Positions 1-54,900 of a stretch of DNA of 64,000 nucleotides are shown piece after piece (the stretch's first letter is position 1; each line of letters starts with the position of its first letter). The stretch is taken from NCBI GenBank assembly GCA_964270895.1, contig OZ185440.1. One strand, written 5' to 3'. The stretch is from Podarcis filfolensis (taxonomy: Eukaryota). The notes under the pieces were generated by a model. The model was not told where the DNA came from. It did no database searches and saw only the letters and a program-made list of their open reading frames with translations. The translations under genes and the position numbers were made by a program.

Positions 1-1400
1 TAACTTTATAGTTTAAATTGTGTTTGAAAGGATTGATACAAGTGGAGACTGTTTCCCTCTAGAGGGAGCTTTTGAAACTGTTACAAGAGTGGAGCTGGGG
101 TTTTTCCAGCTGCAAGATAAGAACTGTGAGAATCAGAGATTGACCTTGGATCTTAAGAATGTCGACAGAAGGAGCCTTAGTGACTGTATTATGTAAGATA
201 AGCTATTTGTTGGAACAGCTCCACAAGAAGACGGATGTTATGAATACTAAACTTGAGACCTTGGGACAAAAAGTGATTAATTTGGGACAAAAAGTGATCA
301 CCAATACAGAAATTGTTCAGGATTTGACACAGGAACCTACTTTGACAGGACAAACTGGGGAGAAGACGAAGGAGAAAGTTGTTGTTGTTGAACCTAAAGT
401 AACACAAGTGGGAGCCCCAGCCTTTCAGAGGCAAATTGAGGACTATAAGTGGAGGCCTTTTATGATTGAATATAGAAAAAGTCAGAATTTGAAGATTGGA
501 GCCCTGCTTGGACTGGAGAAGGAAGGTTGGATAGACTCTTTCATGCAGGGATTTACTGACCTTTGGGTCCTGAATCTGGGTCAGGAGGTGATTGGAGTTG
601 TGGGGGCCTTTGGATCTGGAGGAGCCTTGAAACATGATTTGAGATATTGTATGGACCTTGGTTCTAGCTGTGGAGAGTTGGCTGGCCTGTCGAGAGGGAA
701 TGGGGGCACGGTTGGGTCAGGGCCCCCCCGAGACCTGCTCTTCAGCATCTCCAGCATCAAAGAATATGAAGAAAAACTGCAGAAGGGACTTGGAAAAGAT
801 TTAAGAGCCTCGGACAGAGGATCACCAGGTTGATGAACTATATGGAATGGACGGAAATGACTGGCAGAATCCGAGACCATGGAGAAGAGATGGTGGAAGA
901 AGATTGGGAAAGTTTAAAGTTTATATATAGAAATATTGTAAAATTAATGAGTGTTGGAAAATTGTTGGAATGAAACTTTATGGCTTTAGCAGAAATGTTA
1001 TAAGGAGTTAAGTATAAATAAGTACTTTAGTATTAATGGAAAATAAGGTTAAAATATGTTAAGGTATTCATAATGATAAAAATAGTGAAAGATGGAAAGG
1101 AATTGCTGAAATGTAACAGAAGTGGAATACAAAAAGGGAGGTGAGAGGAGGTCGATGAAATAAGGGAATGAAAGATAGAGTAATGAAATGGTATGGTATA
1201 TGTTTTTAAATTGTTGTTGTTTTGTTTTGTTTAGTTTAGTGTGTTAAGGTTGTGTTTTGTATTGCTTATATATTGTATTGTATTGTTTTTTCGTTTTTTC
1301 TTTTTTCTTTTCTCCTCTATTTTGTCTTTTTCTCTTGCCTTTTTTCTTCTTTTTTCTTTTCTTGTAAGTCTTAAAAGTAATAAAGATTATTTAAAAAAAT
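1..1400 (+). mobile_element. L1-derived ORF1-only (HAL1-like) retroelement, copy 1, 5' part cut off by window edge
   Basis: Colinear with the reverse complement of 48993-50850: same ORF and stop, followed by an ORF2 C-terminal remnant (MNYMEWTEMTGRIRDHGEE), a T-rich 3' UTR and an AATAAA/A-rich tail near 1378-1400. Confidence 0.8.
159..833 (+). CDS. Intact 224-aa ORF1-like protein of the HAL1-like element (coiled-coil N-terminal half)
   Basis: Open ORF with heptad-like repeat [24 protein letters not shown] resembles the coiled-coil/RRM junction of L1 ORF1p. A homologous disrupted ORF lies at 50033-50680 (-). Confidence 0.6.
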   Translation: MSTEGALVTVLCKISYLLEQLHKKTDVMNTKLETLGQKVINLGQKVITNTEIVQDLTQEPTLTGQTGEKTKEKVVVVEPKVTQVGAPAFQRQIEDYKWRPFMIEYRKSQNLKIGALLGLEKEGWIDSFMQGFTDLWVLNLGQEVIGVVGAFGSGGALKHDLRYCMDLGSSCGELAGLSRGNGGTVGSGPPRDLLFSISSIKEYEEKLQKGLGKDLRASDRGSPG

Positions 1401-1707
1401 AGATTTATTTTTAAGAAAAAGCAGCTGTAGGGCCTTGATCTGGAATCATACACTCCAAGTGACCTGTTTTAAGTGGGGCATACCGGATCACAGAAGCCTT
1501 CTGTTTGGATCCCGGAATGGTTTTTTGGTCTGGAGCTCTGGTGCAAGACACTTGCTCGAGCGCAAGTCAGCAGCGCCTTCCTGGCCGGCACTCCGGGGAC
1601 GACCCTGCTGACAACTGCCAGAGCGCCTGATCGAAAGGTGTGTCTCTCCTGACATCCCATAGGAAAAGGATTTGTGTGATTTAAAATAGACATATACTGT
1701 ACTGTAA

Positions 1708-32703: not shown

Positions 32704-32900
32704 TAAAAGGTAAAGGGACCCCTGACCATGAGGTCCAGTCGTGGCTGACTCTGGGGTTGCGGTGCTCATCTCGCTTTATTGGCCGAGGGAGCCAGCATGA
32801 CTAAGCCGCTTCTGACGGACCAGAGCAGCGCATGGAAATGCCGTTGACCTTATCTACTTGCACTTTTTGGTGTGCTTTCGAACTGCTAGGTTGGCAGGAG
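32704..32900 (-). mobile_element. Sauria SINE 3' fragment with internal deletions
   Basis: Reverse complement of the ACCTTT tail (AAAGGTAAAGG) and of CCTGCCAACCTAGCAGTTCGAAAGCAC shared with 38595. Confidence 0.85.
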
Positions 32901-33149
32901 GTTTTATAGATTACAATTGTTTTACTGGAGATTTATATTCTTTATCAATGTTTCTGTGACGTCCTATTATGCTGTAATTTATTGTTTGTACGCCGCTTTG
33001 TGATTCATGTGAGTGAAAAGTGGCCCAGAAATGTAATAAGCCAAGCCCGAGGTCTGCTGTGCATCTGGCTGGGCCAGGGGCCCGATCCTGCAGGCTCTTC
33101 ACCAGCCTCTTCTACACAAGCGCCAAGGAAAACCCCATTTTCAGCCCCG

Positions 33150-33660
33150 AGTGGGACCCCTGCAAGGATATGACCAGAAGCCTTTCCAAGACCTTCCCTG
33201 CGGGCGTCTCCTTCGCCGATTCCCGTCTCCCTGGCCTTCCGAAGAGCTTCCGGAGGGCGCTGCGCACCATTTCTACTTCCCACCTCATTCCATCCTCGCA
33301 ACAACCCGGCGAGGGAGACTGGACGAAGGACGTCATGGCCGGACCGAGGTCACGTGTCTAAAAAAGTGGAGCCCTGGGACTTCCGGTCAGCGCCAGCAAC
33401 TGTAATGGCGGATTTCCTCCGATCTCCGGAGGAAATCTGCTTCGTGGAGCTAGGGTTCTACCGCTACGGTAAGGGTAAGGGTCGGGGGGCGGCTCGGCTG
33501 AGGGTCGCGGGCGGCGCCGAGGGCTTTCCGGCCCCGCAGGCGAGGGAGGAAAAGGCGCCCGGCGCAGGAAGGCCTCCTGGGCGTGGCCTGGATTTTGGGG
33601 GGGGGAGGCCCACCTGCCCCCATTTCTGGGGGGAATTGCTCCGCGCGCCCCGGAAATGTG
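33150..33660 (+). promoter_or_regulatory. RNASEL: CpG-island promoter of RNASEL
   Basis: Only large CpG-rich island upstream of the CDS. It contains an E-box GTCACGTG (~33349), an ETS site ACTTCCGG (33379) and a YY1-type ATGGCGG (33405). Confidence 0.75.
33376..33468 (+). other. RNASEL: Putative RNASEL first (5' UTR) exon; start approximate
   Basis: Ends at donor ACG|gtaagg (tandem second donor at 33475). A matching acceptor ttgcag| at 34746 precedes the ATG by 72 nt. No transcript evidence available. Confidence 0.6.
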
Positions 33661-34818
33661 TCTTCTTGAAGCGAACAGACAGAAAGATGCCATGGCAAAT
33701 ATTCAGTCTTTTGTGTCTCTCTTTTTCTACCTACGTCCTATAGTAAAGAAAGATGTTGTAAATAGGACACCTGGAAGCTTGAAATTATAAAATGACTCAT
33801 TAAAACCAACCACAGTAACATCCGCATTGCACACAGAAAATTAAGATAACAAAGGATTACGTTAAAATAAAAATGACGAATAATCCTAATGAGAAGGATG
33901 AACCTGGTGCTCTGCTATCGATTTATTAATGTTTGGCTCTATTTTTGGCAGCCGCAGCATCCTTAAATCACCTGATTAACTATTTGCAGTTTGTTGCCTT
34001 TTTTTGTTAAGAGATTTGTGACCTCGCTGAGCCCATGTTCCACTAAATACGATGAAGGAAACATGGGTATAGCCAAGGGGGTGGGGGGGCAGCTGTTCGC
34101 CCACATCAAGTAAAACAATAAAAATACTTGACTAACTAACTAATCATGTCAGTTTTGCTGCTCTAACAAAAATCCTGGCTATGCCCATGGAAGAAAATGC
34201 AATTAAAATTGTACTACTGTATAGTCCAGGGGAGGAGGTGTCACTGTCCCACAACAGCACCTGGATAACAGAAAAATCTGTCAAAATCTTCAGTAGGAAG
34301 TTAAATAAAATATTAAAATCATACCAGCATCTTCACCTTATCTTGGTGGTGACAGGTGGGCACAGCAGCAGCAAAAAGAAAAAACACAAGCTGGTATAGC
34401 TAAGAAATGCTGTTACTGGTTCCTGCCCTTTTAATCTTTCCACAATACCTCTCTGCCCCAGTGTAACATTGCTGTGGAGTAACCCTACACTGAGGCACAG
34501 AAGATATTGTGGGGGGAATCAACACGATGGGCACCAGCCACAAGCACTCAGGATCCATGTGACAAAGGCAGTGTGACTAAGTTTTCGCTATGTAGCACCT
34601 CTGTTATTTGAGCCTTCACTATCCAAAACCACTGAATCAAGAGACGCTATGCCTTGCATCCAGCCCTGTGGCACCATAACTCTTTGTGTGAATAGCTCTT
34701 CCATTATTAAGTTGATAATGTCATAGCTGCTGCTTTTGTCTTGCAGTAGAAATATATTCGCAGAAAGCTAATGTAATCACGACTACTGGGAGAGGCGTCA
34801 GAACCCTACAGAAAAGAA

Positions 34819-36229
34819 ATGGCAGCTGATAAAGCCCTTCAGCTAAATAATGCAGTAAGAAGAGGATCGATCGAGACTGTCCGGCAGTTGATAGAAGAAG
34901 GTAATGATATCAATTCAAAGGTGAATGATGGATGGACAGCCCTTCACAGTGCTGTACAAATGAACGAAGAGGCAATTGTTCACCTTCTGCTGGACAGAGG
35001 AGCCGATCCACTTGCTAGGAAGGACAATGGAGCTACCCCCTTTATTCTAGCAGGGATAACAGGCAATGTTGAACTTTTAAAGCTCTTCCTTCAGAAGGGG
35101 TCGGCCATCAATGAGTGTGATTTGAATGGTTTCACGGCATTCATAGAGGCTGCTGGGTATGGGCGAGAAGAGGCCCTGAGGTTTTTGTATGAGTGTGGGG
35201 CAGATGTTAACTTGCCCAGAAATGTGGCTGATGAGGATAAAAGGGCCCTGAATAAAGGTGGCAAAACAGCCCTGATGGATGCTGCCAGGTATGGTCACTG
35301 CTCTGTTGTCAAAGTCCTAGTTGAAGAATTGGGTGCTGATGTGAACATCTGCGACAACTGGGAGAGAAATGCATTGGTCCATGCTCTCTCAGTGACTAAA
35401 AAGGATCAGGCCCAAGGCAAAGAGGCAGCTGCCCTTTTCCTCTTAAAACATGGGGCTGATGTGAATAAGAGAGATGAAGTTGGGAAAACTACTTTGATCC
35501 TGGCAGCTGAAATGCAAAGCCTAGACCTGGTGAAGGCTATATTGGAAAAAGAAGTGGACGTGAACAACGCTGACAAAAACAACAAAACAGCCCTTATGGC
35601 AGCAGTGGAAATGGAAAATTATGAAATAGCGAAGACATTATGTGAAAAGGGAGCAAGAACAGACATTGGGAACTTGATAGATATGGCCAGCCTGAATTAC
35701 AACAACAGAATGATAACGCTTCTTCGCCAGTATGGAGCATTGTCTTGTCTAAGGCAGCCAGAAATACAATGGACCTCTGCTAGCAGACACTGGCAATCCA
35801 AGCTCCGAGATCTTTATGGAAAGTATCGTCCTATGATTGGAAAACTCAAGATCTTCATGGTTTCAGATTTCCGAATTCAGACAAGTTCCCACGGAGGTGT
35901 CTACCTAGGATTCTACAATGGGGAAGAGGTGGCTGTGAAGATATTCCCCACCACTGCAGAAAATGCTAAACGAGAGAAAACCTGCCTTGAGAAGTGCCGT
36001 ACCAGCAAACATCTGGTGAAGTTCTGTGGGTGGGAAGAGCAGAACTCCTGTCTCTACTTGTGTCTTTCCCTATGTGAGAAAAACCTTGAGGAATACTTCA
36101 GGACAGCAGAGACTGAGAATGGAACTATGAGAAGTAATGTTATTATTGAAACAATATTTCAGGCAGTGAAGGAACTGCACTCATTTGGATTTGGGCATCA
36201 AGATCTGCACCCAAGTAACGTTTTGATAG
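34819..36229 (+). CDS. RNASEL: RNASEL coding exon 1 (ankyrin repeats and kinase N-part)
   Basis: GWTALHSAVQ, RKDNGATPF, GFTAFIEAA, YRPMIGKLK, HQDLHPSNVLI; donor G|gtttgt. Confidence 0.95.
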
Positions 36230-36973: not shown

Positions 36974-39900
36974 GGAAGGAGAGATTCCAGCTCAGGAATA
37001 GAATATCTGCTTTTCAGGCAAAAAGTTAATTATGTTCAACCCCCAGCATCTCCAGGCACGGTTGGGAGAGACTCCTGTGTGGCCCTGTGGAGAGCCACTG
37101 TCAATCTGAGCATAAACAATGTTGAGTGCAGAGGGACCAATGGTCTGACTAGATATAAGGTAGCTTCCTGTGATCCTAGTCTGCACTCTACTCACCCAGC
37201 TCCCAGATCAAGCCGTCTGGAAGCTGACACCACCATCCTAAATCTTGAGAATAATTTCACTACACCTTTTTACTGCTTCAGAAATGTGGCCCGCCCCTCC
37301 AATAGATCTCCATTGTTTACTTACTTATTATGCACTAATACTTCGAATATTATGATTTCTCCTCTGCATTATATCCCCTCAACAAATCTGGAACGTAGGA
37401 CTAAGCAGATGGATGGATGGTTTCAGACAGAAGTCATTCTGGTTCTACCTGGAGAACAACCTACACCAGGCACCCCCAAACTCGGCCCTCCAAAAGTTTT
37501 GGGACCAAAACTCCCACCATCCCTGACCACTGGTCCTGTTAGCTAGGGATGATGGGAGTTGTAGTCCCCAAACATCTGGAGGGCCAAGTTTGGGGGTGTC
37601 TGACCTACATATTCAGATAAAAAAATAAGTTCTGTTGGCATCTACATTAGGGTGGCAAATCTTTTTAGGATCAAAGGTTACATTGCCATGTTGTGACTTC
37701 CAGTAACTGAGCGTGGGGGGGGGGGAGTCCCTGAAGTGATATTAGTGCTTGAGGTGAATATTTATTTATCATACTTCTGTGCTGCCTCAACATCAGAAAT
37801 ATAAAAACAATACATTTCAAATAAAACGTAAAAGCTAAAAGCAGCAGAGATAAAGTGAAACTAGTCAACAATACCATAAAAATGTTCATGACACAGACAC
37901 ATCTTTGATGTTTTAAAATAAAGTGTCAAAATCTCAAAAATCCACAGAAATCAAAAGCCCCTAAAAAGCCTTGGGAAATGAAAATGTCTTCATTTGACCA
38001 TAACAGCAATACAAAGTAGGCATCAGGTGGACTCTCTGGGGAGGCCATTCTATAACTGGGTATAACAGCTGAGAAGGCCTTCTCCCTAGCAACCACCAGC
38101 TAGCTCTCATTAGGCAGGGACATGCAGAGAAGAGCCTCAGGCGCTGACATAAAGTTTCACGTAAGTTTGCATGTGAGCAGGTGAATTGGCTGCTCTTGTT
38201 GAATCTTGAAAGTTTCCAATATGTGCTCTTTCCCCACAAAGCATTCAATACACAAAGATGTGAAAACCATTCCGCTTGATTGCTTCCACTTATGTATTTA
38301 TTTATTTTGCTAGATGTCACAGGCAAGGTTTTTCTAGCAGATTTTGATAAGACCAGAAAATTAGATGATGAAAAAGATCTTACCATCACAGAAGATCTGC
38401 AGGTAAGTTGCCTCTGCAGTTGCCTCTCCAGCCTTCTATATTTGCAGAATGATTATCCCCAACCATTAAGGCAATGTATTGTGTGTTTGTGCACAATATA
38501 CTTTTATGCTTAACCATAACGTAGAGTCGGATTGAATGTTAGTCCTACTCAGAGTAGCCCCATTGAAATTAATGTATCTGGCTAACCTAAGATCGGGGAC
38601 GCGGGTGGCACTGTGGGTAAAACCTCAGCGCCTAGGACTTGCCGATCGCATGGTCGGCGGTTCAAATCCCCGCGGCGGGGTGTGCTCCTGTCGTTCAGTC
38701 CCAGCGCCTGCCAACCTAGCAGTTCGAAAGCACCCCCGGGTGCAAGTAGATAAATAGGGACCGCTTACCAGCGGGAAGGTAAACGGCGTTCCGTGTGCTG
38801 CCCTGGCTCGCCAGATGCAGCTTGTCACGCTGGCCACGTGGCCCGGAAGTGTCTGTGGACAGTGCTGGCTCCCGACCTATAGAGTGAGATGAGCGCACAA
38901 CCCTAGAGTCTGTCAAGACTGGCCCGCACGGGCAGGGGTACCTTTACCTTTACCTTTAACCTAAGATCAGTAATTCCAATGAGTTTACCCAAACTTTGCC
39001 CGGTTCAACTTGTATTTATTTATTTGATTTCTTACCAGTCCTTCACCAAAAGGTGCCAGGGTGGAGTACAACAGTTTTAAATACATTTCTGTATTATTGG
39101 AAACATTTTAAAACAAATTAAAGTCACGGGAATGTGGTAGGTCCTGAAAATGAGTATATCAGGTGTATTGTTCAAAGAACAAGAATAAATTGACATCAGT
39201 AAGAATGTTAATTGCTAGTTCTGGTCCCAGGAGTTCTTTCTGGTAACAGTGTCATTGTTTTTGTGAAATTTTTAATTTCCTGTATAACCCTGGTATAGTC
39301 GTACCTTGGAAGTCGAATGGAATCCGTTCCGGAAGTCCATCCGACTTCCAAAATGTTCAGAAACCAAAGCACAGCTTCTGATTAGCTGCAGGAAGCTCCT
39401 ATAGCCAATCAGAAGCTGCGGAAGCCCCATCGGACGTTCGGGTTCCAAAGAATGTTTGCAAACCGGAACACTCACTTCCAGGTTTGCGGCATTTGGGAGC
39501 CAAAATGTCCAAGTACCAAGGCGTTGAAGATCCAAAGTACGACTGTAGATTAGAGAATTTAATAACCTGTCAGTGCAGCCCTGCGTTTCTAAGGGCCAAA
39601 TTTGATTCCAGTCGTGGTGGTGGGAATCTGATCAGGACCATAGTGGTGAAGAACCAGTGTGTGCCGGGGAATGGTATCTAAACATTCCTCCAACATTTTT
39701 TCCCCAGGTTGAAATTACCTCCATCTGCTATTTAGTCTATAGGGCAAAACATAGAGATACTGAACAAGCTGTAGTATAATCCTATTCTCTAACATTTTAG
39801 GTAGGTTTCTACATGCAAGGGGTGTGTTTGTGTGTAGAAACATTATGTCATGTGATTGCATCACTTGCAATTTAAACTGACACAGCCCAGACACAGATTT

Positions 39901-42900
39901 TTAGCATCTCGGCAAGAACTAAGCCCAGGCACAAAGGATAAAAGTGTGATTCCAGTCTACTTGCCCAAGAATGACATTCTGTGTTGTGAAATCGTATTGC
40001 CATTTGTTCTCACATGTAGGCGCTCAGAAGTCTAGCCCTATATGTTGCTATGAGGGGGACAATCTGCTTTGAAGCCTTGCCTGCGCAGTGTCCGAAGGAT
40101 GTAGATGATTACTTTGAAATAGAAGACCTCAGAGCAAGACTGGAATCTCCTGATGAAAACATCCCAGTCACTGAGCAACTGGGACAGTTGATCTACCATC
40201 CTTATTTCTGGAGCAAGAAGGTGTAAGTACTAAATAAATACAGGAAACTTAGCAACTATCCATTCTTATCATTCTGCCTTCCTCAGTTTGATTTGCCCTG
40301 TTACTACAACAGCATGGAAGAAGAAACTTTGCAAGTAGGATTAGAATGACATTTTGGGAAAATGTTGTAATCCATTCATTTCTATTTTTTGAAATCTTAA
40401 GTTTTGCCTTCAGAATTGAAGCTCAGAATTAGATTACGCTGCTTTATATGTCTTTGTTGCTTATAGACTGTCATGTGCTTTGTCATGTTGTTTAAAATAT
40501 AATGAATGTTCAGGCTGGGTTGTTGTCCCTCATGTGAAAACCACATGGCTAATCATTAATGTAAGATAAAAATAATGCAGTCAAACCTCGGTTGTCAAAT
40601 GTAATCCATTCTGGTTACAGGTAGGTAGCCGTGTTGGTCTGCCGTAGTCGAAACAAAATAAAAAAATACCTTCCAGTAGCACCTTAGAGACCAACTAAGT
40701 TTGTTAATGGTATGAGCTTTCGTGTGCATCCGTTCTGGAAGACTGTTTGACTTCCGAAATGTTTGACAGCCAAGTTGCAGCTTCCGTTTGGTTGCAAGAG
40801 CTTTTTGCACTCAAGCAGAAGCCGCGTTTGAAGTTCAAGTTTCAAGGAACATTCGAAAACAGGAGCATTTACTTCTGGGTTTTTGGCATTAGGGAGCCGA
40901 AACGTTTGAATATGGAGCCATTCGAGAACCGAGGTTTGACTGTATATATATTTCAGTAAATAACTGCAGTGAACTTTGGATAGTGAGTTTGCTGCAGATA
41001 TGACAGCACATTGATGCAGTATTGATATTATTTGTCATTGCTAGCCATCAAATACCAAATGTTGAATATGAACTATGTGACGTGCAATTGGCACTGAAAT
41101 CCATGCACTAAGATTTAAAGGATCAATGTCTGATTCTACGCTACTATTTAGGGCTCTGAAAATCCACCCTCATGCCTAACAAAAAATCTCAAGAGACTTC
41201 AACAGGCAGAAACACACATTTCAAATTGGTTTTGCACAGCCACAATAATAATGCCACATCTGGAGAGCCACAGATTAGCCACACTGCATTAGATGGTAAT
41301 GTGTCAGGGAGAGAAAAGGCAAAATCAGAGTTTTGTTATAAAAGGCAGCTTGCAGAGCAAGGATGCCCCTTCCTTGCATATGACAGGAGTTAATGGGTGC
41401 AGTATACCTGCCCCAGGAGAACAGAGGAAGCTGCTTTATTCTAGGTCAGACTATTTGTCTATGTCTTGGTGTTGTCTGCTCTGCCTGGCTGCCACCAGGG
41501 TCTCATTGCCTGCTACTGGGTCCTTTTAACTGGCGATGGCAGGTGTTGAAGCTGGGACCAAGCGTGTGCTCTGTCCTTTCCCCGTCTCTGAGACCAGCCT
41601 TACCATATGGTCACCTTGGCTCTTTGGGTTCTTAGTAATTGCCTTTTGTTTGCCAGGAGATACAGGGTCTTAAGAGACGTTGGGAATGAGAGCGATATAA
41701 AGACACGCAACACTCGGCACCATAACAGCACTAGTGAAATTCTGAAGGCTCTGAATAGTGAGGAAGATCCTTTCAAGGACTGGACTGAAAAGGTAAGTGA
41801 TCTCTTGCAACTCCGTATGAAAGCTTCAGCCGTGTTGATTTGAACCGCCACATTTGACCTCTTTTCCTTCTGCATTGTCAGTGCCAGTGCTTCATCACTT
41901 CTCAAAGGCATGAGGGCAACTTAAGTGCAAAACAAACAGCTTAGGTCTGATTCATGTCTTTACAATATGTACACCTGGTCCTGGGCAAGTATCTGTTTGC
42001 CCCTGCAAAACCATTCCTATGTCTGTGAAATGATTTGCCGTTAGGTCAGATTTTAAACATAGCTGTACCTCGGAAGTCAAACAGAATCTGTTCCGGAAGT
42101 CCATTCAACTTCTGAAGTGCGGCTTCTGATTGGCTGCAGGAAGCTCCTGAAGCCAATCGGAAGCTGCAGAAGCCCTGCTGGACATTTGGCTTCCAAAAGA
42201 AGGTTCGAAAACTGGAACACTCACTTTTGGTTTTCGATCATTTGGGAGCTGGAATGTTCAACTCCCAAGGTGTTCGGGAGCCAAGGTATGACTGTATTGC
42301 AAAATCTGCCAAGCAATATAACTGGAAACTGTTTCAATAAATTAACCGGTATAGTATTATAATAACCAATATATGTCATACTTCATGCCATTCTGTCAAA
42401 TTTATATTTTTGCATATATTTTTGTATATTTTTGTATACTGTATATTTTTGTGACTTGGAATCTGCCAGCTTGCAGGTCTACATGGAAACTGTATTGTGA
42501 GGAGTGGGTTTCATGGACCCAGATTAATGACAGGGGACATGTGTTTTTTTCAGATTGATAAGGATGTATTGGACTGTATGGTTGGTCCCTTTAATGACAA
42601 GAAAAAGAATAAGAATAAGAAAAACAATAAAGATTATCAAAACTGTGTGACAGATTTACTGAAGCTGATCAGGAATATGGGGGAGCACTTCAGTGAGAAG
42701 GATGAGAAGTAAGTGAGAGTTGTTTTTTTCTAGATTTGCAGCTGTCCCTAGCCTTCTGCAGAGGAGTCACTGAGTGGCCATTTCTATGCAGTGTACTTCC
42801 TCTTCTGTAAACCAGTATGTGAATCCGGACTTAGATAATCACATCTTTGGAAAGGCCTCCCAGTGGTCAAGTGGAGTTTTGCACCTCAGCTACCGGCTTC

Positions 42901-43337
42901 AAGTCAAAGGGCTAAACTGAGGACTCATTCATGCTTCCTTTTGTGCTGCATTTTTTAGGCACAGGTCCGGGCTTTAAAGCGCCACGTCTGAGTGCATTTG
43001 TTTTATCCCAGCACTATGCCCAGGAAAACCCATGCTTTGATGTTGAATCAGAGCATACAGCAATAGGGTTTTCCGTGGATTGGCATTTGCTCCAATTCAG
43101 AGACCAACATTCACATTCTATTTTAAAACAATACAAATCTAAACTACTGCTTGCTTACATACTGGTATTAAAAGGATTCACATTTTCCTCTATTTCAGGG
43201 TGAAGGAAATAATCAAGGAGCCAGAAGACTATTTTCTGAAACTTTTCCCAAATTTAACAACTTATGTCTACCGGACTTTGCATAATATAAAATATGATAA
43301 ACATTTTCCGAATGCACAGAATTCTTCTCAGCTATAA
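34819..43337 (+). CDS. RNASEL: 2-5A-dependent ribonuclease L (complete, 6 coding exons, 710 aa)
   Basis: Exons 34819-36229, 38314-38402, 40020-40222, 41657-41792, 42554-42708, 43199-43337 (2133 nt, phases compatible). Ankyrin repeats, pseudokinase (EVAVK, HQDLHP, LADFD) and RNase domain (LLKLIRNMGEH). Confidence 0.96.
36922..36972. repeat. (AAT)n microsatellite forming the tail of an L2-type 3' end
   Basis: Follows GCCACTCTGAGCCC...GGGCGGGATATAAATAAA. Confidence 0.85.
38314..38402 (+). CDS. RNASEL: RNASEL coding exon 2
   Basis: gctag|AT; DVTGKVFLADFDKTRKL...EDLQ; CAG|gtaagt. Confidence 0.95.
38595..38956 (+). mobile_element. Full-length Sauria SINE
   Basis: tRNA-like head with A/B boxes (GGTGGCACTGTGG; GGTTCAAATCCC), (ACCTTT)n tail and 12-bp TSD TAACCTAAGATC at 38583-38594 and 38957-38968. 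Confidence 0.95.
39296..39545. mobile_element. Tc1/mariner-type MITE (RNASEL intron)
   Basis: TA-flanked TAGTCGTACCTTGG / CAAAGTACGACTG ends; homologous copy at 42060-42294. Confidence 0.75.
40020..40222 (+). CDS. RNASEL: RNASEL coding exon 3
   Basis: tgtag|GCG; ALRSLALYVAMRG...LIYHPYFWSKK; GT|gtaagt. Confidence 0.9.
40578..40942. mobile_element. MITE interrupted by a 113-bp Penelope-like insertion
   Basis: TIR CAGTCAAACCTCGGTT / AACCGAGGTTTGACTG. The insert 40615-40727 is flanked by near-perfect 11-bp repeats ATCCATTCTGG / ATCCGTTCTGG. Confidence 0.75.
41657..41792 (+). CDS. RNASEL: RNASEL coding exon 4
   Basis: gccag|G; RYRVLRDVGNESDIKTR...FKDWTEK; AAG|gtaagt. Confidence 0.95.
42060..42294. 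mobile_element. Tc1/mariner-type MITE, same family as 39296
   Basis: Shared GTTCCGGAAGTCC...GCTGCAGGAAGCTCCT...CCAAGGTATGACTGTA. Confidence 0.75.
42554..42708 (+). CDS. RNASEL: RNASEL coding exon 5 (catalytic RNase motif)
   Basis: ttcag|ATT; DYQNCVTDLLKLIRNMGEHF; AA|gtaagt. Confidence 0.95.
43199..43337 (+). CDS. RNASEL: RNASEL coding exon 6 (to stop)
   Basis: tttcag|G; VKEIIKEPEDYFLKLFPNLTTYVY...KHFP...QL*. Confidence 0.93.
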
Positions 43338-48928: not shown

Positions 48929-51900
48929 CTTTTTGAAATTGTAATAATAAAAAAGACAAAACATAATATTACACCAGAGGATTCCCAATCTCTCTCTTTT
49001 TTTTTAAATAATATTTATTACTTTTAAAGATTACAGAAAAGGGAAAAAAAGGAAAAAGACAAAAGAGAAAAAACAAAAGAGAGAAGAGACATGTCAGGGA
49101 ACTGACATCGGAGCCAGAGGTGGAGGCAAGGCTCCCAAGCGATGCTGGAGAAGGGCCCAGCAGGGAGAGAGGGAGCTCATCGGCTGGGGAAGGAAATCAG
49201 CGTAACACCAGGGATAAAGGGGGGCAGATGGGGGAATCGGCGAGGGGGCTCCAGGACTCCTCGCCGGAGACCAGCGGGGAGAGCACAGGTCCTCCGCTAC
49301 CCACACCCACCCTGCGCAGAAGACTTCCGCACAGGGAAAGTAGGCGTAGACTTGGCGTCAAAGAACTTCTTTGCTGGAAGAAGTTCAAGAAACGCCCACT
49401 TACGGATTCTGCTAGCGACTGAAACAGCCACGAAGTGAAGGGCTGTCCAGACAGAAAAGGTTTAACCAGGCAACCTAGCCAGGAGTGGCGGCAACTTACG
49501 CACGAGCAATCCCTATAACCATTACAAGACAATACAATACAATATATAAACAATAAAGAACACAACCTAAACACATTAAACTAGACACATTAAACTAAAC
49601 TAAACAAAACCCTAACTCACCCTAACCCTAAACAAAGCAAAACAAAAACCATTTAAAAACATACATCACACCTTTTCCATATCTATCTTTCATTCCCTTG
49701 TTTCCTCGACCTCCTCTCACCTCCCTTTTTGTATTCCACTTCTATTAATTGTTTCAGCAAATCCTTTCCATCTTTCTCTATTTTCTATCATAATATAAAT
49801 ATCTTAACATATTTTTAACGTTATTTTCCATTAAAGATAAAATACTTATATATGCTTAACTCCTTATAACATTTCTGCTAAGGCCATAAAATTTCATTCC
49901 ACCATTTTTCTATCACTCATTAATTTTACAGTATTTCTATATATAAACTTTAAATTTTCCAATCTTCTTCCACCATCTCCTCTCCCTGGTTTCGGGTTCT
50001 GCCAGTCCTTTCCGTCAATTCCATATAGTCCATCAACCTGGCGATCTTATATCCGAGGCTCTTAACTCTTTTCCAGGCCCCTTCTGCAGGTCTTCTTCAT
50101 ATTCTTTAATGCTAAAGAGCAGATCTCGGGAAGACTCCGACCCAACAATACTTTTATTCCCTCTGGACAGGTCAGCCAAATTTCCATAGTTGAAGCTAAG
50201 ATCCATAAAGTGTTTCAGGACATGTTTCAAGATTCCTTCAAATCCAAAGGCCCCCAGAACTTCGATCTCCTCCAAACCCAAGTCCATGTCCCAGAAGTCA
50301 GTTAATCCCTGCATAGAGGGATCTTTCCAACTTTCCTTCTTCAGTCCAAGCCGGGATCCGATCCTCAAAATCTGACTTTTTCTAGATTCAATCATAAAAG
50401 GCCTCAACCTATAGTCCTCAATTTGCTTCTATAAAACTAAGGATCCCTCTTGTACTACTTTAGGTTCAACAACAACAGCTTTCTCCTTCTCCTCCACAAT
50501 TTGTCCTGCCAAAGTGGATTCCTGTACCAAGTCCTGAATTATTTCTGTGTTGGTGCTCACTTTTTGTCTCAGATTAATCACTTTTTGTCCCAAGTTATCA
50601 ATTTTAATAGTCATAGTGAAGCTGTTCCAGCGAATAGCTTACCTTACATAATACGGTCACTATGGCTTCTGTCAACATTCTTAAATGGTCCAAGGTCAAT
50701 TCCCGGTTCTCACAATTTCTTATCTTGCAGCTGGAGATTCCCCAGTTCCACTCCTGTAGCAATTTCAAAAGCTCCCTCTAGAGGGAAACAGTCTCCACTT
50801 GTATCAATCCTTTCAAACACAACTCAAGCAATAAAGATAGTTTCAATTTTCAGTTACTTTTCCTCCTTTTTAAACGCAGAAGAGAACAATGGAAACAGTA
50901 TACTTCTCTTATTTAGTTAGCTGTCAAATACGTTCTGTTCACAGTCAATGAACTCTCCCAAAACGTCACTTTTTCTAGCAGCCCGTTTCCAGGTTTAGAG
51001 CGGTGGTAATTTGATTTTTCGCTCTCTCCTGCAGGCTCGCTAGGTTCAAAATTTCCCCCCTCTTCTCCTGCTTCCAAGGGGGGTTTGGTGTTTTTATCCG
51101 ACGGAAATTAATCCTTTACCAAAGATTTTCCATGACTTTAGCTTGTAACGTCTTTGCTTCAAACTATTTACAAAAGAGGAAGGCGGACTTCCTGTTTAAA
51201 ACCTTCCTGTTTCAATGCCAAATTAAGATATTTGAAGATCCAATTTTCTGTTCTACTCACGGGTAGTTGTTTAAAGTCCAATTGTCCGCAGGAAAAAGTC
51301 AGCGCTCTCCGGCAACAGCAATGCAGCTTCACTCCATGAAAAAAGCAGTCGATTCGAAGCACCGCGCCACTCACCCCACGTCGCTCCGGATCCCCAAAAC
51401 AGGGTTTCCCCGCGGGTAGGGGAGGCGCAAAAGGTGCCAGCCGAATCCCAAGTTCACAAGCTTCTCCCGCCTGTGATTTCAGTGGGTCTCCGCCTTCGCC
51501 GTGGCGGTCAGACCCTGGTTTCCACGGAGCAAGTTCCTCCCGATCGGAGGAGCTCCGCCATTGCCAAAGGCGCCAACCCGGAAGTCCCCAGAGGATTCCC
51601 AATCTCACCAATCACCTTTCTGAAGGTCCGGTTACCCCAGATAGGATAGATGCAAATCTCTGTGGTTGTTAAAAGCACAGAGAATACTTTAAAGAAAACT
51701 GTTCAGAAGCCAGAATTCCATTCTCTTGATGGAATAGACACTTAATAATTACTTGACATGTGCTCAATGCATTTTTGGCTGGCTAACTTCTGAATAGTTT
51801 TTCTGTCAATTAATGCTTATGTGGCATCATCATGCATCTTAAGCCTCAAGACTTGAGCTATATGCAACTTCTCAGCGAGCCTGAAACTGCTCAACAAACT

Positions 51901-54900
51901 AATTGCACAAGATTGCCAGCTTGAAGACTCCTGGAGAAAAAAATGATTTTGATTTCAATATAATAATAATAATAATTATAATAATTATAATAATAATAAT
52001 ACAAGTTACATTTGTTAGTCGCTTTATCTTGCTCAAGGCAACCCAAAGCAACTTACAGAGCAATGGGCAAAGGGGGCTAGAAAGGTGAGATAAGATTCTG
52101 TGGAATATCATAGCACCTATTAGCTTGCTGTGGCCAGGATGGGAGGCTCAGAAGGTGGCTTTCCTTCTTTTTTCCTTTCCCTTCCTTTCCTTCCCTTTAC
52201 TCTCCCTACTGACTCTGCCCCTCACGCTGACCACATCAGCTCCAGGACCTGTTTAGTGGCCTGTCAGGGCAGGGAGGGGCTTAGGGATCAAGGAGAACCA
52301 CGACCCTGACATGTCCCAGTTCAGCCCACACCATCCAAGGAACATCAGCCGTGGGTCACCAACAGTGATGGAGCTTTCCACTCCCATAGGGAAGAAACCT
52401 TTGCCAGCAGACCTCCCTCTCTGCTGACAGGGGTTGTGGTTCCTTCCACTGCCTTGTCTGCTGCCTCAGCCACTCTCCCACAAGGTTGTCATCCAATTTT
52501 CAAAGAACTTAGAATTTTTAACCATGGATTCTGACTTAGTCATAACTGGGCAACTGTGTATTGGAAGAGACTGTATATTGAAACTATGGAGCTAAGCAAA
52601 TTCAACAAGAGAGTATTTCAGATACTTTGAAATACTTCATAATAGTGTTGTGAGTTTTGGTTGTGTGCCTGGGTCCCTTCGGATTCCTGTATCCTCCAAG
52701 GATTGGTAATGCCCCCCTAAGTATGGGTTGTGAAGGTAACAAAGGAAGTGGTTCTGTGCCAGAGAGCAAATGGGTGGGCCCTCCTCCCTCAATCGACCAG
52801 TAGTTTTTGGGACGAGCGCAGAAAGAATAAACGCCATGGTGCATCTGCAGCAGCACAGCTGGATGCCTTCATCTGCCCCAGCTGCAACAAAACATGTCTC
52901 TCCCATATGGGTCTCTACAGCCACAGCAGACACTGTAACTCTCCAACTTCACCTCCAAAGGTTCACTCTTCCATTGTCTTGTGAGACGAGTCTCACACTG
53001 CTCAGAGTGGGGAGGCATGCAACAATATAATTAGAATCATAGAATCATAGAATCATAGAGTTGGAAGAGACCGCAAGGGCCATCGAGTCCAACCCCCTGC
53101 CAAGCAGGAAACACCATCAGAGCACTCCTGACATATGGTTGTCAAGCCTCTGCTTAAAGACCTCCAAAGAAGGAGACTCCACCACACTCCTTGGCAGCAA
53201 ATTCCACTGTCGAACAGCTCTTACTGTCAGGAAGTTCTTCCTAATGTTTAGGTGGAATCTTCTTTCTTGTAGTTTGGATCCATTGCTCCGTGTCCGCTTC
53301 TCTGGAGCAGCAGAAAACAACCTTTCTCCCTCCTCTATGTGACATCCTTTTATATATTTGAACATGGCTATCATATCACCCCTTAACCTCCTCTTCTCTA
53401 GGCTAAACATGCCCAGCTCCCTTAGCTGTTCCTCATAAGGCATCGTTTCCAGGCCTTTGACCATTTTAGTTGCCCTCCTCTGGACCCGTTCCAGTTTGTC
53501 AGTGTCCTTCTTGAACTGTGGTGCCCAGAACTGGACACAGTACTCCAGGTGAGGTCTGACCAGAGCAGAATACAGTGGCACTATTACTTCCCTTGATCTA
53601 GATGCTATACTCCTATTGATGCAGCCCAGAATTGCATTGGCTTTTTTAGCTGCCGCGTCACACTGTTGGCTCATGTCAAGTTTGTGGTCAACCAAGACTC
53701 CGAGATCCTTTTCACATGTACTGCTCTCAAGCCAGGTGTCACCCATCTTGTATTTGTATTTCATAATTAAATATGACATGATCTAAAATGTCAAGAGATG
53801 GTATTTATTCTGCATTATTGGAATATATGGGCACATGAAGACAAACATGCAAAAACACTCACACACACTTTCTGGTCAGATACATATGTCATAAGGTGTA
53901 ACAGATGCAACAGAGTACATAGAATCTGCACACTCTTGCTTACCACCAGTGTAACAGCTGGGCCTCCTAGATAGTTTTGTTGTAACCACTGGAGGAGAAG
54001 GTTCTGTTTTCTCTGACTTGGGTTTTTTGAAGCCCCTCATTGCCTTCCAAGTGCAATATCTGCAAGGATAGCGTTGACATTGGCATACTGTATTTAACTG
54101 AGACAACCAAAGGCATTGTTACTGGCTGGGACAGTCACAAAAGATGGGACTGCACGACAAAAATAGTTGCCAAACCGGCTATAGCTTTATTGAGCCCCTG
54201 CTGATTTGGCCCCAGAGCCATTCTTCCAGCCCTGGTGTCGCTGCAGCTTGCAATGGCTGAATAATAGCTGTTTGTGTTTGCATGGCCACGCCATCACAGA
54301 TTAATTTATCACATAAAACATGCACTTGCAAAATGGTCATGATAAGCTTAGCAAATTATAACCACACCTATTGTGTTAACCCAATTAAATCCTCATCCTC
54401 CGATATCTGCCCCCTAATTTGGCTCCTCTTGAATTTGATTTTTTAAATTGTGTTGTTAAGTTGCAAAGGCAACTTTGGGTCAGATTCAATGAATCTGTTT
54501 ATAATCTACACGCAATGGCTTCATCCATTACCATTATAACAATAATGCACACACTTTGCCTTTCTAATCTACTTACTTCTTCCAGTAGAATAATAAAACT
54601 GGAAAGATACTCATAAAAGCAGAATGATAAAGAATCCTGTTCAGCACACCTTCAGCAATAAAATTTCGGATCTGAACGACCTGTGCATCTGTGAGGTTGA
54701 CCTGGACACAGAAGAAGAGGCCATATCAGGAAGCAGATGACAACTACATCAACCTTCAATTAGAAAGAAACAGAACATTTCATAGCACAGCTGATGTCAC
54801 AGGATCCTTTGGGATCCTACCTTTCAACTGAGGGCTGAATGCAAGAACCTGCATGTGAGGCTTTCTTTGGGGGAAACAGACGCACAATACTAGGGAGGTC

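Follow-up and report, generated by a model that had tools for sequence, protein, structure and literature searches.

A putative L1-derived first exon at RNASEL in the lizard Podarcis filfolensis

Introduction

When the presumed first exon of a host gene and the 5' end of a retrotransposon carry the same sequence, which of the two was the giver, and by what route did the sequence travel? We address this question in a stretch of 64,000 nucleotides from Podarcis filfolensis (GenBank assembly GCA_964270895.1, contig OZ185440.1), called the window below. A first-pass annotation, made from the letters alone, had noticed that the putative first exon of RNASEL resembles the 5' end of an L1-derived element 18 kb away, and it had left two explanations side by side: either the RNASEL mRNA lost a copy of its 5' end to an L1 lineage, which used it as an internal promoter, or RNASEL took up an L1 5' end as its first exon. 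The two make different statements about the history of the gene, and we compared the locus with its orthologues in other lizards, with L1 elements and with sequencing contigs of the same and related species.

The RNASEL gene in the window

The gene is RNASEL and its coding sequence is intact. The encoded RNase L is 95% identical to the 2-5A-dependent ribonuclease of P. lilfordi, the record of which carries PF06479 (Ribonuc_2-5A), and a Pfam search of exon 2 returned Ank repeats and Pkinase. All six coding exons are open, with stops only in the intron overhangs, and the coding sequence is 97% identical to that of P. raffonei. The exons are located as follows:

34553..36229, plus strand: RNASEL exon 2, with the extent that it has in RNA-like contigs of a related species
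38304..43334 (span), plus strand: other RNASEL coding exons, at 38304-38405, about 40020-40223, 41658-41795, 42551-42709 and 43197-43334, found by tblastn with P. raffonei RNase L

The start codon is at 34819, and the sequence ahead of it offers two splice acceptors. RNA-like contigs of a relative at 1.7% divergence cover exactly 34553-36229 and place the start of exon 2 at about 34553, with the acceptor cactcAG/G, 194 nt upstream of a second, stronger-looking acceptor at 34746/34747 that the first-pass annotation had assumed. An intronic contig also breaks at about 34553 and, together with the exon start seen in the RNA-like contigs, this suggests alternative acceptors in the RNASEL 5' UTR. 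Upstream of exon 2, the relative's RNA-like contigs carry 210 nt that are not on the window, and none of them shows a joint to 33468. Contigs were the only form of read evidence used, and transcript starts, strand and expression levels are not readable from them.

A 93-nt similarity to an L1 5' end

The region ahead of intron 1 combines host sequence and a short piece of L1, with these parts:

33300..33375, plus strand: conserved upstream host flank with a CACGTG box, an A-run and GTGGAGCCCTG, orthologous in P. lilfordi, P. muralis, Zootoca and L. agilis
33376..33468, plus strand: L1 fragment and putative new first exon, 93 nt, about nt 1-93 of a lizard clade-1-type L1, in sense
33379..33386, plus strand: ETS-type motif ACTTCCGG of the L1 5' terminus, found by pattern search; the published 5' consensus of lizard L1 has this as its first motif (PMC5381506)
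33405..33411, plus strand: YY1-type core ATGGCGG, invariant in seven of seven aligned L1 5' ends
33407..33441, plus strand: 15-bp hairpin within the L1 fragment, from RNA folding
33469..33480, plus strand: host splice donor GGTAAG, retained and here in tandem duplicate; aligns with GGTAAG in five of five lacertids

The claimed homology between 33376-33469 and the reverse complement of 51499-51588 stands. The pair, 33376-33469 on the plus strand against 51588-51499 on the minus strand, is the best local alignment between the two 500-bp neighbourhoods, with a score of 34, while 500 dinucleotide shuffles gave a mean of 11.6 (sd 1.5) and a maximum of 20; in this shuffle test, which the first-pass annotation had proposed, the alignment is thus significant at a z of about 14. 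By blastn within the window, which is free of any N, the two are 72.9% identical over 96 columns (E 1e-7), and the pair is the sole match of either sequence in the 64 kb. On the RNASEL side the match begins at the first base of the L1-derived partner, a 5' end defined by a target-site duplication (TSD) with all 19 of 19 bases identical, and it ends with ACGG directly before the GT of the RNASEL donor; both borders are those described earlier. That two promoters with ETS and YY1 motifs might have come to look alike by chance or convergence has one point in its favour, the two motifs being the best-aligned blocks. We nevertheless regard the idea as negligible, given the distance from the shuffled scores, a similarity that runs well beyond the motifs over 93 nt to include the hairpin and a 3' block, and the existence of a multicopy family at 98% identity.

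The fragment folds strongly, the whole 93 nt of 33376-33468 reaching -38.5 kcal/mol with a z of -3.2. All seven L1-type 5' ends have a stem just behind the YY1-type core, and it varies mostly on one side. Covariation extends to two of the 24 pairs and we therefore do not claim a selected RNA structure; the hairpin could equally be a palindromic protein-binding site. An upstream ORF begins with the ATG at 33405 and runs for 40 or 48 codons, according to the acceptor used; with the acceptor at 34747 it stops 10 nt beyond the RNASEL start.

The partner element is an L1 derivative

The second half of the matching pair lies at the 5' end of an element with the following parts:

48993..51587, minus strand: partner element, a 2.6-kb L1-derived, ORF1-only (HAL1-like) retroposed element with an L1-type 5' UTR, a decayed ORF1, AATAAA and an A-run
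51588..51606, minus strand: 5' copy of the TSD, 19 bp, matching 48992-48974 at 19 of 19 positions
48974..48992, minus strand: 3' copy of the TSD, 19 bp, preceded by AATAAA and the A-run
4..1403, plus strand: second copy of the element family, 83% identical to 50836-49599 and with the same 3' end, its 5' part cut by the window start

The unit between the TSD copies measures 2596 bp on the minus strand, with AATAAA and a short A-run as its 3' end, and in Zootoca, Lacerta agilis, Podarcis muralis and P. raffonei the site is empty and the 19-mer single; the retroposition is therefore young. The 5' UTR is 68% identical over 865 nt to that of an L1 of P. lilfordi, and the ORF pieces match lacertid L1 ORF1 proteins in tblastn (best E 4e-19), with ORF1 broken by a stop. 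A Pfam search of the ORF pieces found no L1 domain, so the L1 link stands on the 5' UTR similarity and on the tblastn matches to lacertid ORF1. With the poly-A and the 19-bp TSD added to these two, the earlier description of the partner as L1-derived is upheld.

HAL1 (half-L1) elements are ORF1-only L1 derivatives of mammals. Our element is like them in having an L1 5' UTR, a relative of ORF1, no ORF2, a poly-A signal and tail, a long TSD and multiple copies; unlike them, it belongs to a lizard family that shares no common descent with mammalian HAL1, and in this copy a stop interrupts ORF1, which Pfam misses. The element sits inside the range of a neighbouring large RGS-domain gene (1000-1143 aa), which runs opposite to RNASEL; as it shares the orientation of this gene, the element is presumably intronic and sense there. 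Its 3' UTR has an extra GC-rich segment of ~440 bp (49087-49526, minus strand), absent from the second copy (at 1289-1311), which may be a nested insertion or a difference between subfamilies. Farther along, 53117-53779 on the minus strand holds a 220-aa ORF that resembles the C-terminal part of a CR1-type LINE ORF2 (..LEYCVQFW..) and for which Pfam gave no significant family.

The shared terminus belongs to L1

The L1 fragment at RNASEL aligns with the 5' ends of the partner element, of the P. lilfordi L1 and of four ORF1-bearing contigs. The P. lilfordi L1 (L001:20099) has 947 nt upstream of a 370-aa ORF1 (in UniRef, an L1 RRM domain protein), followed by an ORF2 with Exo_endo_phos. This copy (L001:20099-26300) is near full length, with the 947-nt 5' UTR and with the endonuclease and further pieces of ORF2 spread over several ORFs, and it is found only in P. 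lilfordi, 2 kb downstream of RNASEL, where the other lacertid loci have an RGS-domain gene. The same 5' module heads four more contigs (L008, L009, L011 and L016), upstream of ORF1 in each and 71-78% identical to the copy at RNASEL, while their ORF1s are only 55-60% identical to that of P. lilfordi; one of them, L011, starts exactly at GGGACTTCC. After ACGG, all six L1 sequences read CGAAG.CGGGGACCC, and the RNASEL copy instead has the host GTAAGG.

The terminus has been described before. In Anolis, the 5' consensus of clade-1 L1 is GACTTCCGGTG-N8-ATGGCG (Boissinot and Sookdeo 2016, PMC5381506), and the first ~120 bp of these elements are conserved across families (PMC5381506). We searched for GACTTCCGG followed by ATGGCG within about 30 nt and found both at RNASEL, with ACTTCCGG at 33379 and ATGGCGG at 33405. 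Like the published clade-1 terminus (PMC5381506), the fragment starts with G(G)GACTTCCGG and continues to ATGGCG, and it corresponds to the most conserved part of a long 5' UTR that is common to families with very divergent ORFs. It differs in the spacing of the motifs, where CCGG is followed by 18 nt in the RNASEL copy and by 16 in the partner element, against 10 in the Anolis consensus, and in being an isolated 93-nt piece with no L1 body. Taken together, these comparisons indicate that the 5' terminus is L1's own and is old.

The partner element is one more member of the same 5' UTR type and not the donor of the fragment. A closer source shows in the sequencing contigs. For a second sample of the same organism, the contig depth summed over 33362-33488 is 3553 against 9.5-13 in the flanks, and in a relative at 1.1% divergence it is 480 over the 94-mer (33376-33469) against about 1, with the reservation for both figures that depth is not copy number. 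A 136-nt contig of that relative, at a depth of 295, matches 33380-33469 with 2 mismatches in 90 nt and then continues for 46 nt unlike the window. Such a contig fits a near-identical (98%) L1 source family, the source subfamily being seen as a short contig only.

What was replaced, and when

We compared the RNASEL loci of P. lilfordi, P. muralis, P. raffonei, L. agilis, Zootoca and Rhineura; the gene ranges of these orthologues start at the coding sequence. The five lacertids align with the window up to 33361-33376 and again from 33467-33541, and the 94-mer is absent from RNASEL in all five. Between the anchor GTGGAGCCCTG and the donor GGTAAG they instead carry a mutually conserved segment, 448 nt long in P. 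lilfordi in a MAFFT alignment and 380-550 in the five species by BLAST borders. As this segment is shared by five lacertids between the same anchor and donor, it follows that the lineage of the window has replaced the ancestral exon-1 region with nt 1-93 of L1; the ancestral segment was not found anywhere in the window. In a tree of intron 1 and exon 2, the window is sister to P. raffonei with a support of 0.996 (97.9% identity) and nested in Podarcis, and since P. raffonei is without the 94-mer, the replacement is derived and younger than the split of these two.

We also considered the 94-mer as a diverged form of the ancestral segment. The candidate, a patch in P. raffonei reading TGGCG..TTTCCTCC, scores 10 against a shuffle mean of 8.8, with 25% of the shuffles as good, and was rejected. 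Logan contig P0122, examined for an mRNA with the ancestral exon 1, turned out to be genomic DNA and has nothing on the 5' UTR.

In P. raffonei itself, the promoter and exon-1 segment has been rearranged independently (L006:8254-8450, orthologous to window 33362-33376). About 250 bp of the ancestral segment have given way to a 40-bp unit (CCAATCAGACTGCTGCC...) repeated roughly three times in tandem, with the last ~190 bp before the donor kept, and the alignment of the upstream flank to this species ends after GTCTAGGA, ahead of the A-run and the anchor. The RNASEL promoter and exon-1 region looks structurally labile.

The absence of the 94-mer at five loci and the presence of the terminus in divergent L1s set the direction as L1 to RNASEL. 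The reverse, in which the RNASEL mRNA would have supplied an L1 lineage with an internal promoter, would explain why the match ends at a splice donor, as the capture of a spliced mRNA predicts. It is refuted all the same: the five lacertid RNASEL loci, P. raffonei included, lack the sequence, yet L1s of those lizards carry it, at the head of several divergent elements with ORF1 and ORF2; both motifs belong to the consensus published for the clade-1 L1 of Anolis (PMC5381506); and the end at ACGG is accounted for by microhomology between the L1 and the old donor. The alignment of lacertid RNASEL 5' regions, suggested earlier as a check, has therefore not borne out the capture. The opposite proposal, that RNASEL took an L1 5' end, holds as far as an L1 5' end stands at the position of the first exon, and has to be modified in its manner, which was a non-classical replacement with target deletion. 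An argument given for it falls away, the A-run just upstream, once likened to an L1 target site, being ancestral host sequence that is present in other species. As the event came after the split from P. raffonei, the locus says nothing on the origin of L1 5' UTRs.

How the replacement may have happened

There is no TSD at the fragment, the flanks being collinear with the orthologues and nothing duplicated, and no poly-A, the L1 being 3'-truncated at about nt 93 where ACGG passes into the host GTAAGG; nor was an L1 body or poly-A remnant found in intron 1. About 450 bp of host target DNA were lost relative to the state before the insertion. At the 3' junction CGG is common to L1 and host, and at the 5' junction a single G; this microhomology of 1-3 nt is short and hence gives weak support. 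Insertion of L1 at double-strand breaks without its endonuclease was reportedly described by Morrish et al. in 2002. In the published cases, such endonuclease-independent insertions lack a TSD and show truncation, target deletion and junction microhomology (Sen et al. 2007, PMC1920257). The missing TSD and poly-A, the target deletion and the sharing of 1-3 nt at the junctions therefore give our fragment the anatomy of an endonuclease-independent L1 insertion. The missing L1 body and second TSD, earlier taken to favour capture by L1, thus point to a non-classical insertion with target deletion.

On these grounds we think it rather probable, if well short of established, that a recent sense copy of about the first 93 nt of an L1 replaced the ancestral exon-1 region of RNASEL via endonuclease-independent repair and is now placed as a putative first exon. 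The likeness to the known insertions (PMC1920257) covers the lack of TSD and poly-A, the truncated L1, the target deletion, the junction microhomology and the absence of a TT/AAAA cleavage site. There are also differences, as the fragment at RNASEL is very short (93 nt), 5'-complete and in a reptile, and it lands exactly on the first exon of a gene with the donor spared and with a putative RNA template. The course of events could have been as follows. A double-strand break would have occurred in the RNASEL 5' CpG island, and the broken end beside the donor would have annealed via CGG to an L1 RNA at about nt 93; the annealed end could then have primed reverse transcription up to the 5' end of the L1 RNA, and the cDNA would finally have been joined to the upstream end. 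That the template would have been L1 RNA is deduced solely from the start of the fragment at L1 nt 1, and the sequence cannot separate an RNA template from a DNA template.

The same replacement might accordingly have taken place at the DNA level, be it by insertion of a full-length L1 with target deletion and a later loss of everything past nt 93, or by a microhomology-mediated template switch or gene conversion that copied the start of a genomic L1. The CGG at the 3' junction and the one nucleotide at the 5' junction would suit such a route, as would the lability of the promoter segment, with its independent rearrangement in P. raffonei. The exact start at L1 nt 1, however, is the end of an RNA and no landmark in DNA; the two-step version needs a second deletion that ends exactly at the border of L1 and host, and intron 1 has no remnant of an L1 body or poly-A. 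We hold the DNA-level route to be unlikely and prefer endonuclease-independent repair with an L1 RNA as the probable template.

Reliability of the assembly and variation among individuals

For the structure of both junctions in the reference animal, the basis is the share of words found in one sequencing run. In the likely source sample, 0.99 of the sampled words (31-mers) of 32900-35400 are present, with at most about three words missing. A second individual with the same organism label yields a 500-nt contig that fits 33474-33740 and continues for 223 nt unlike the window. The departure of this contig at the right junction is what one might expect if the structure were an assembly artefact or came from a chimeric read in a GC-rich region; with nearly all sampled words held by the source-sample run, and with a flush fit to both L1 nt 1 and the conserved donor that an artefact would hardly produce, we consider this very unlikely. 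An ancestral allele with a single GGTAAG would also yield such a contig, and the replacement could therefore be polymorphic or confined to the reference animal.

Putative role of the fragment

The donor is retained and even duplicated, and the upstream host flank survives together with its CACGTG box and A-run, which leaves the L1 piece where a first exon would lie; from the old donor and the intact coding sequence we infer that it stands as one. The ETS and YY1 motifs of the fragment probably help to set the transcription start, in concert with the retained flank. It is quite possible, if on the unlikely side, that the fragment is instead unused. The allele would then have lost its first exon and core promoter, leaving RNASEL silent, weak or started elsewhere, and would be a neutral or mildly harmful variant and possibly a rare one. 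The contig of the second individual that leaves the window at 33474 would agree with this, and so would the burden on the new leader, which would bear a strong upstream ATG and a 15-bp hairpin. The retained and duplicated donor, the kept flank, the conserved L1 start motifs and a coding sequence still intact and 97% identical to that of P. raffonei nevertheless speak for a fragment in use as a putative first exon.

Host promoters and first exons derived from transposons are well known, among them the chimeric transcripts from the sense and antisense promoters of L1 and the promoters provided by LTRs. As in those cases, the start region of a transposon lies here in sense upstream of a host donor and could start host transcripts; unlike them, the piece at RNASEL replaces the native first exon and is not added as an alternative, and its role in transcription is putative. 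A stronger proposal, that in carriers the 93-nt L1 start would function as a minimal promoter and as the first exon of RNASEL, we regard as doubtful. Were it true, RNASEL would share its activating factors and its repressors with the L1 family that its nuclease could degrade. RNase L restricts engineered L1 in human cells (PMC3973342), and a feedback reading is therefore conceivable: the locus would provide a natural feedback loop, carried by a young and perhaps segregating allele and open to comparison with the ancestral allele within one species.

Even at its most modest, the case has some use. The direction is settled, L1 having given to RNASEL recently, and the locus is no longer a candidate for revealing the source of an L1 promoter. 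It provides a new example of known processes, recent and possibly segregating, and a clean and datable case in a reptile of a non-classical L1 insertion that deleted the first exon of a gene, put the L1 start there and spared the donor. If carriers and non-carriers coexist, they form a natural test of whether transcription can start from no more than the first 93 nt of a lizard L1, and of whether an L1-type leader with an upstream ATG and a 15-bp hairpin alters the output of an innate-immunity gene.

A very high-copy short repeat occupies 32706-32870, immediately before the RNASEL CpG island; its summed contig depth reaches the millions in both DNA runs, it is abundant in RNA-like runs too, and it is probably a SINE.
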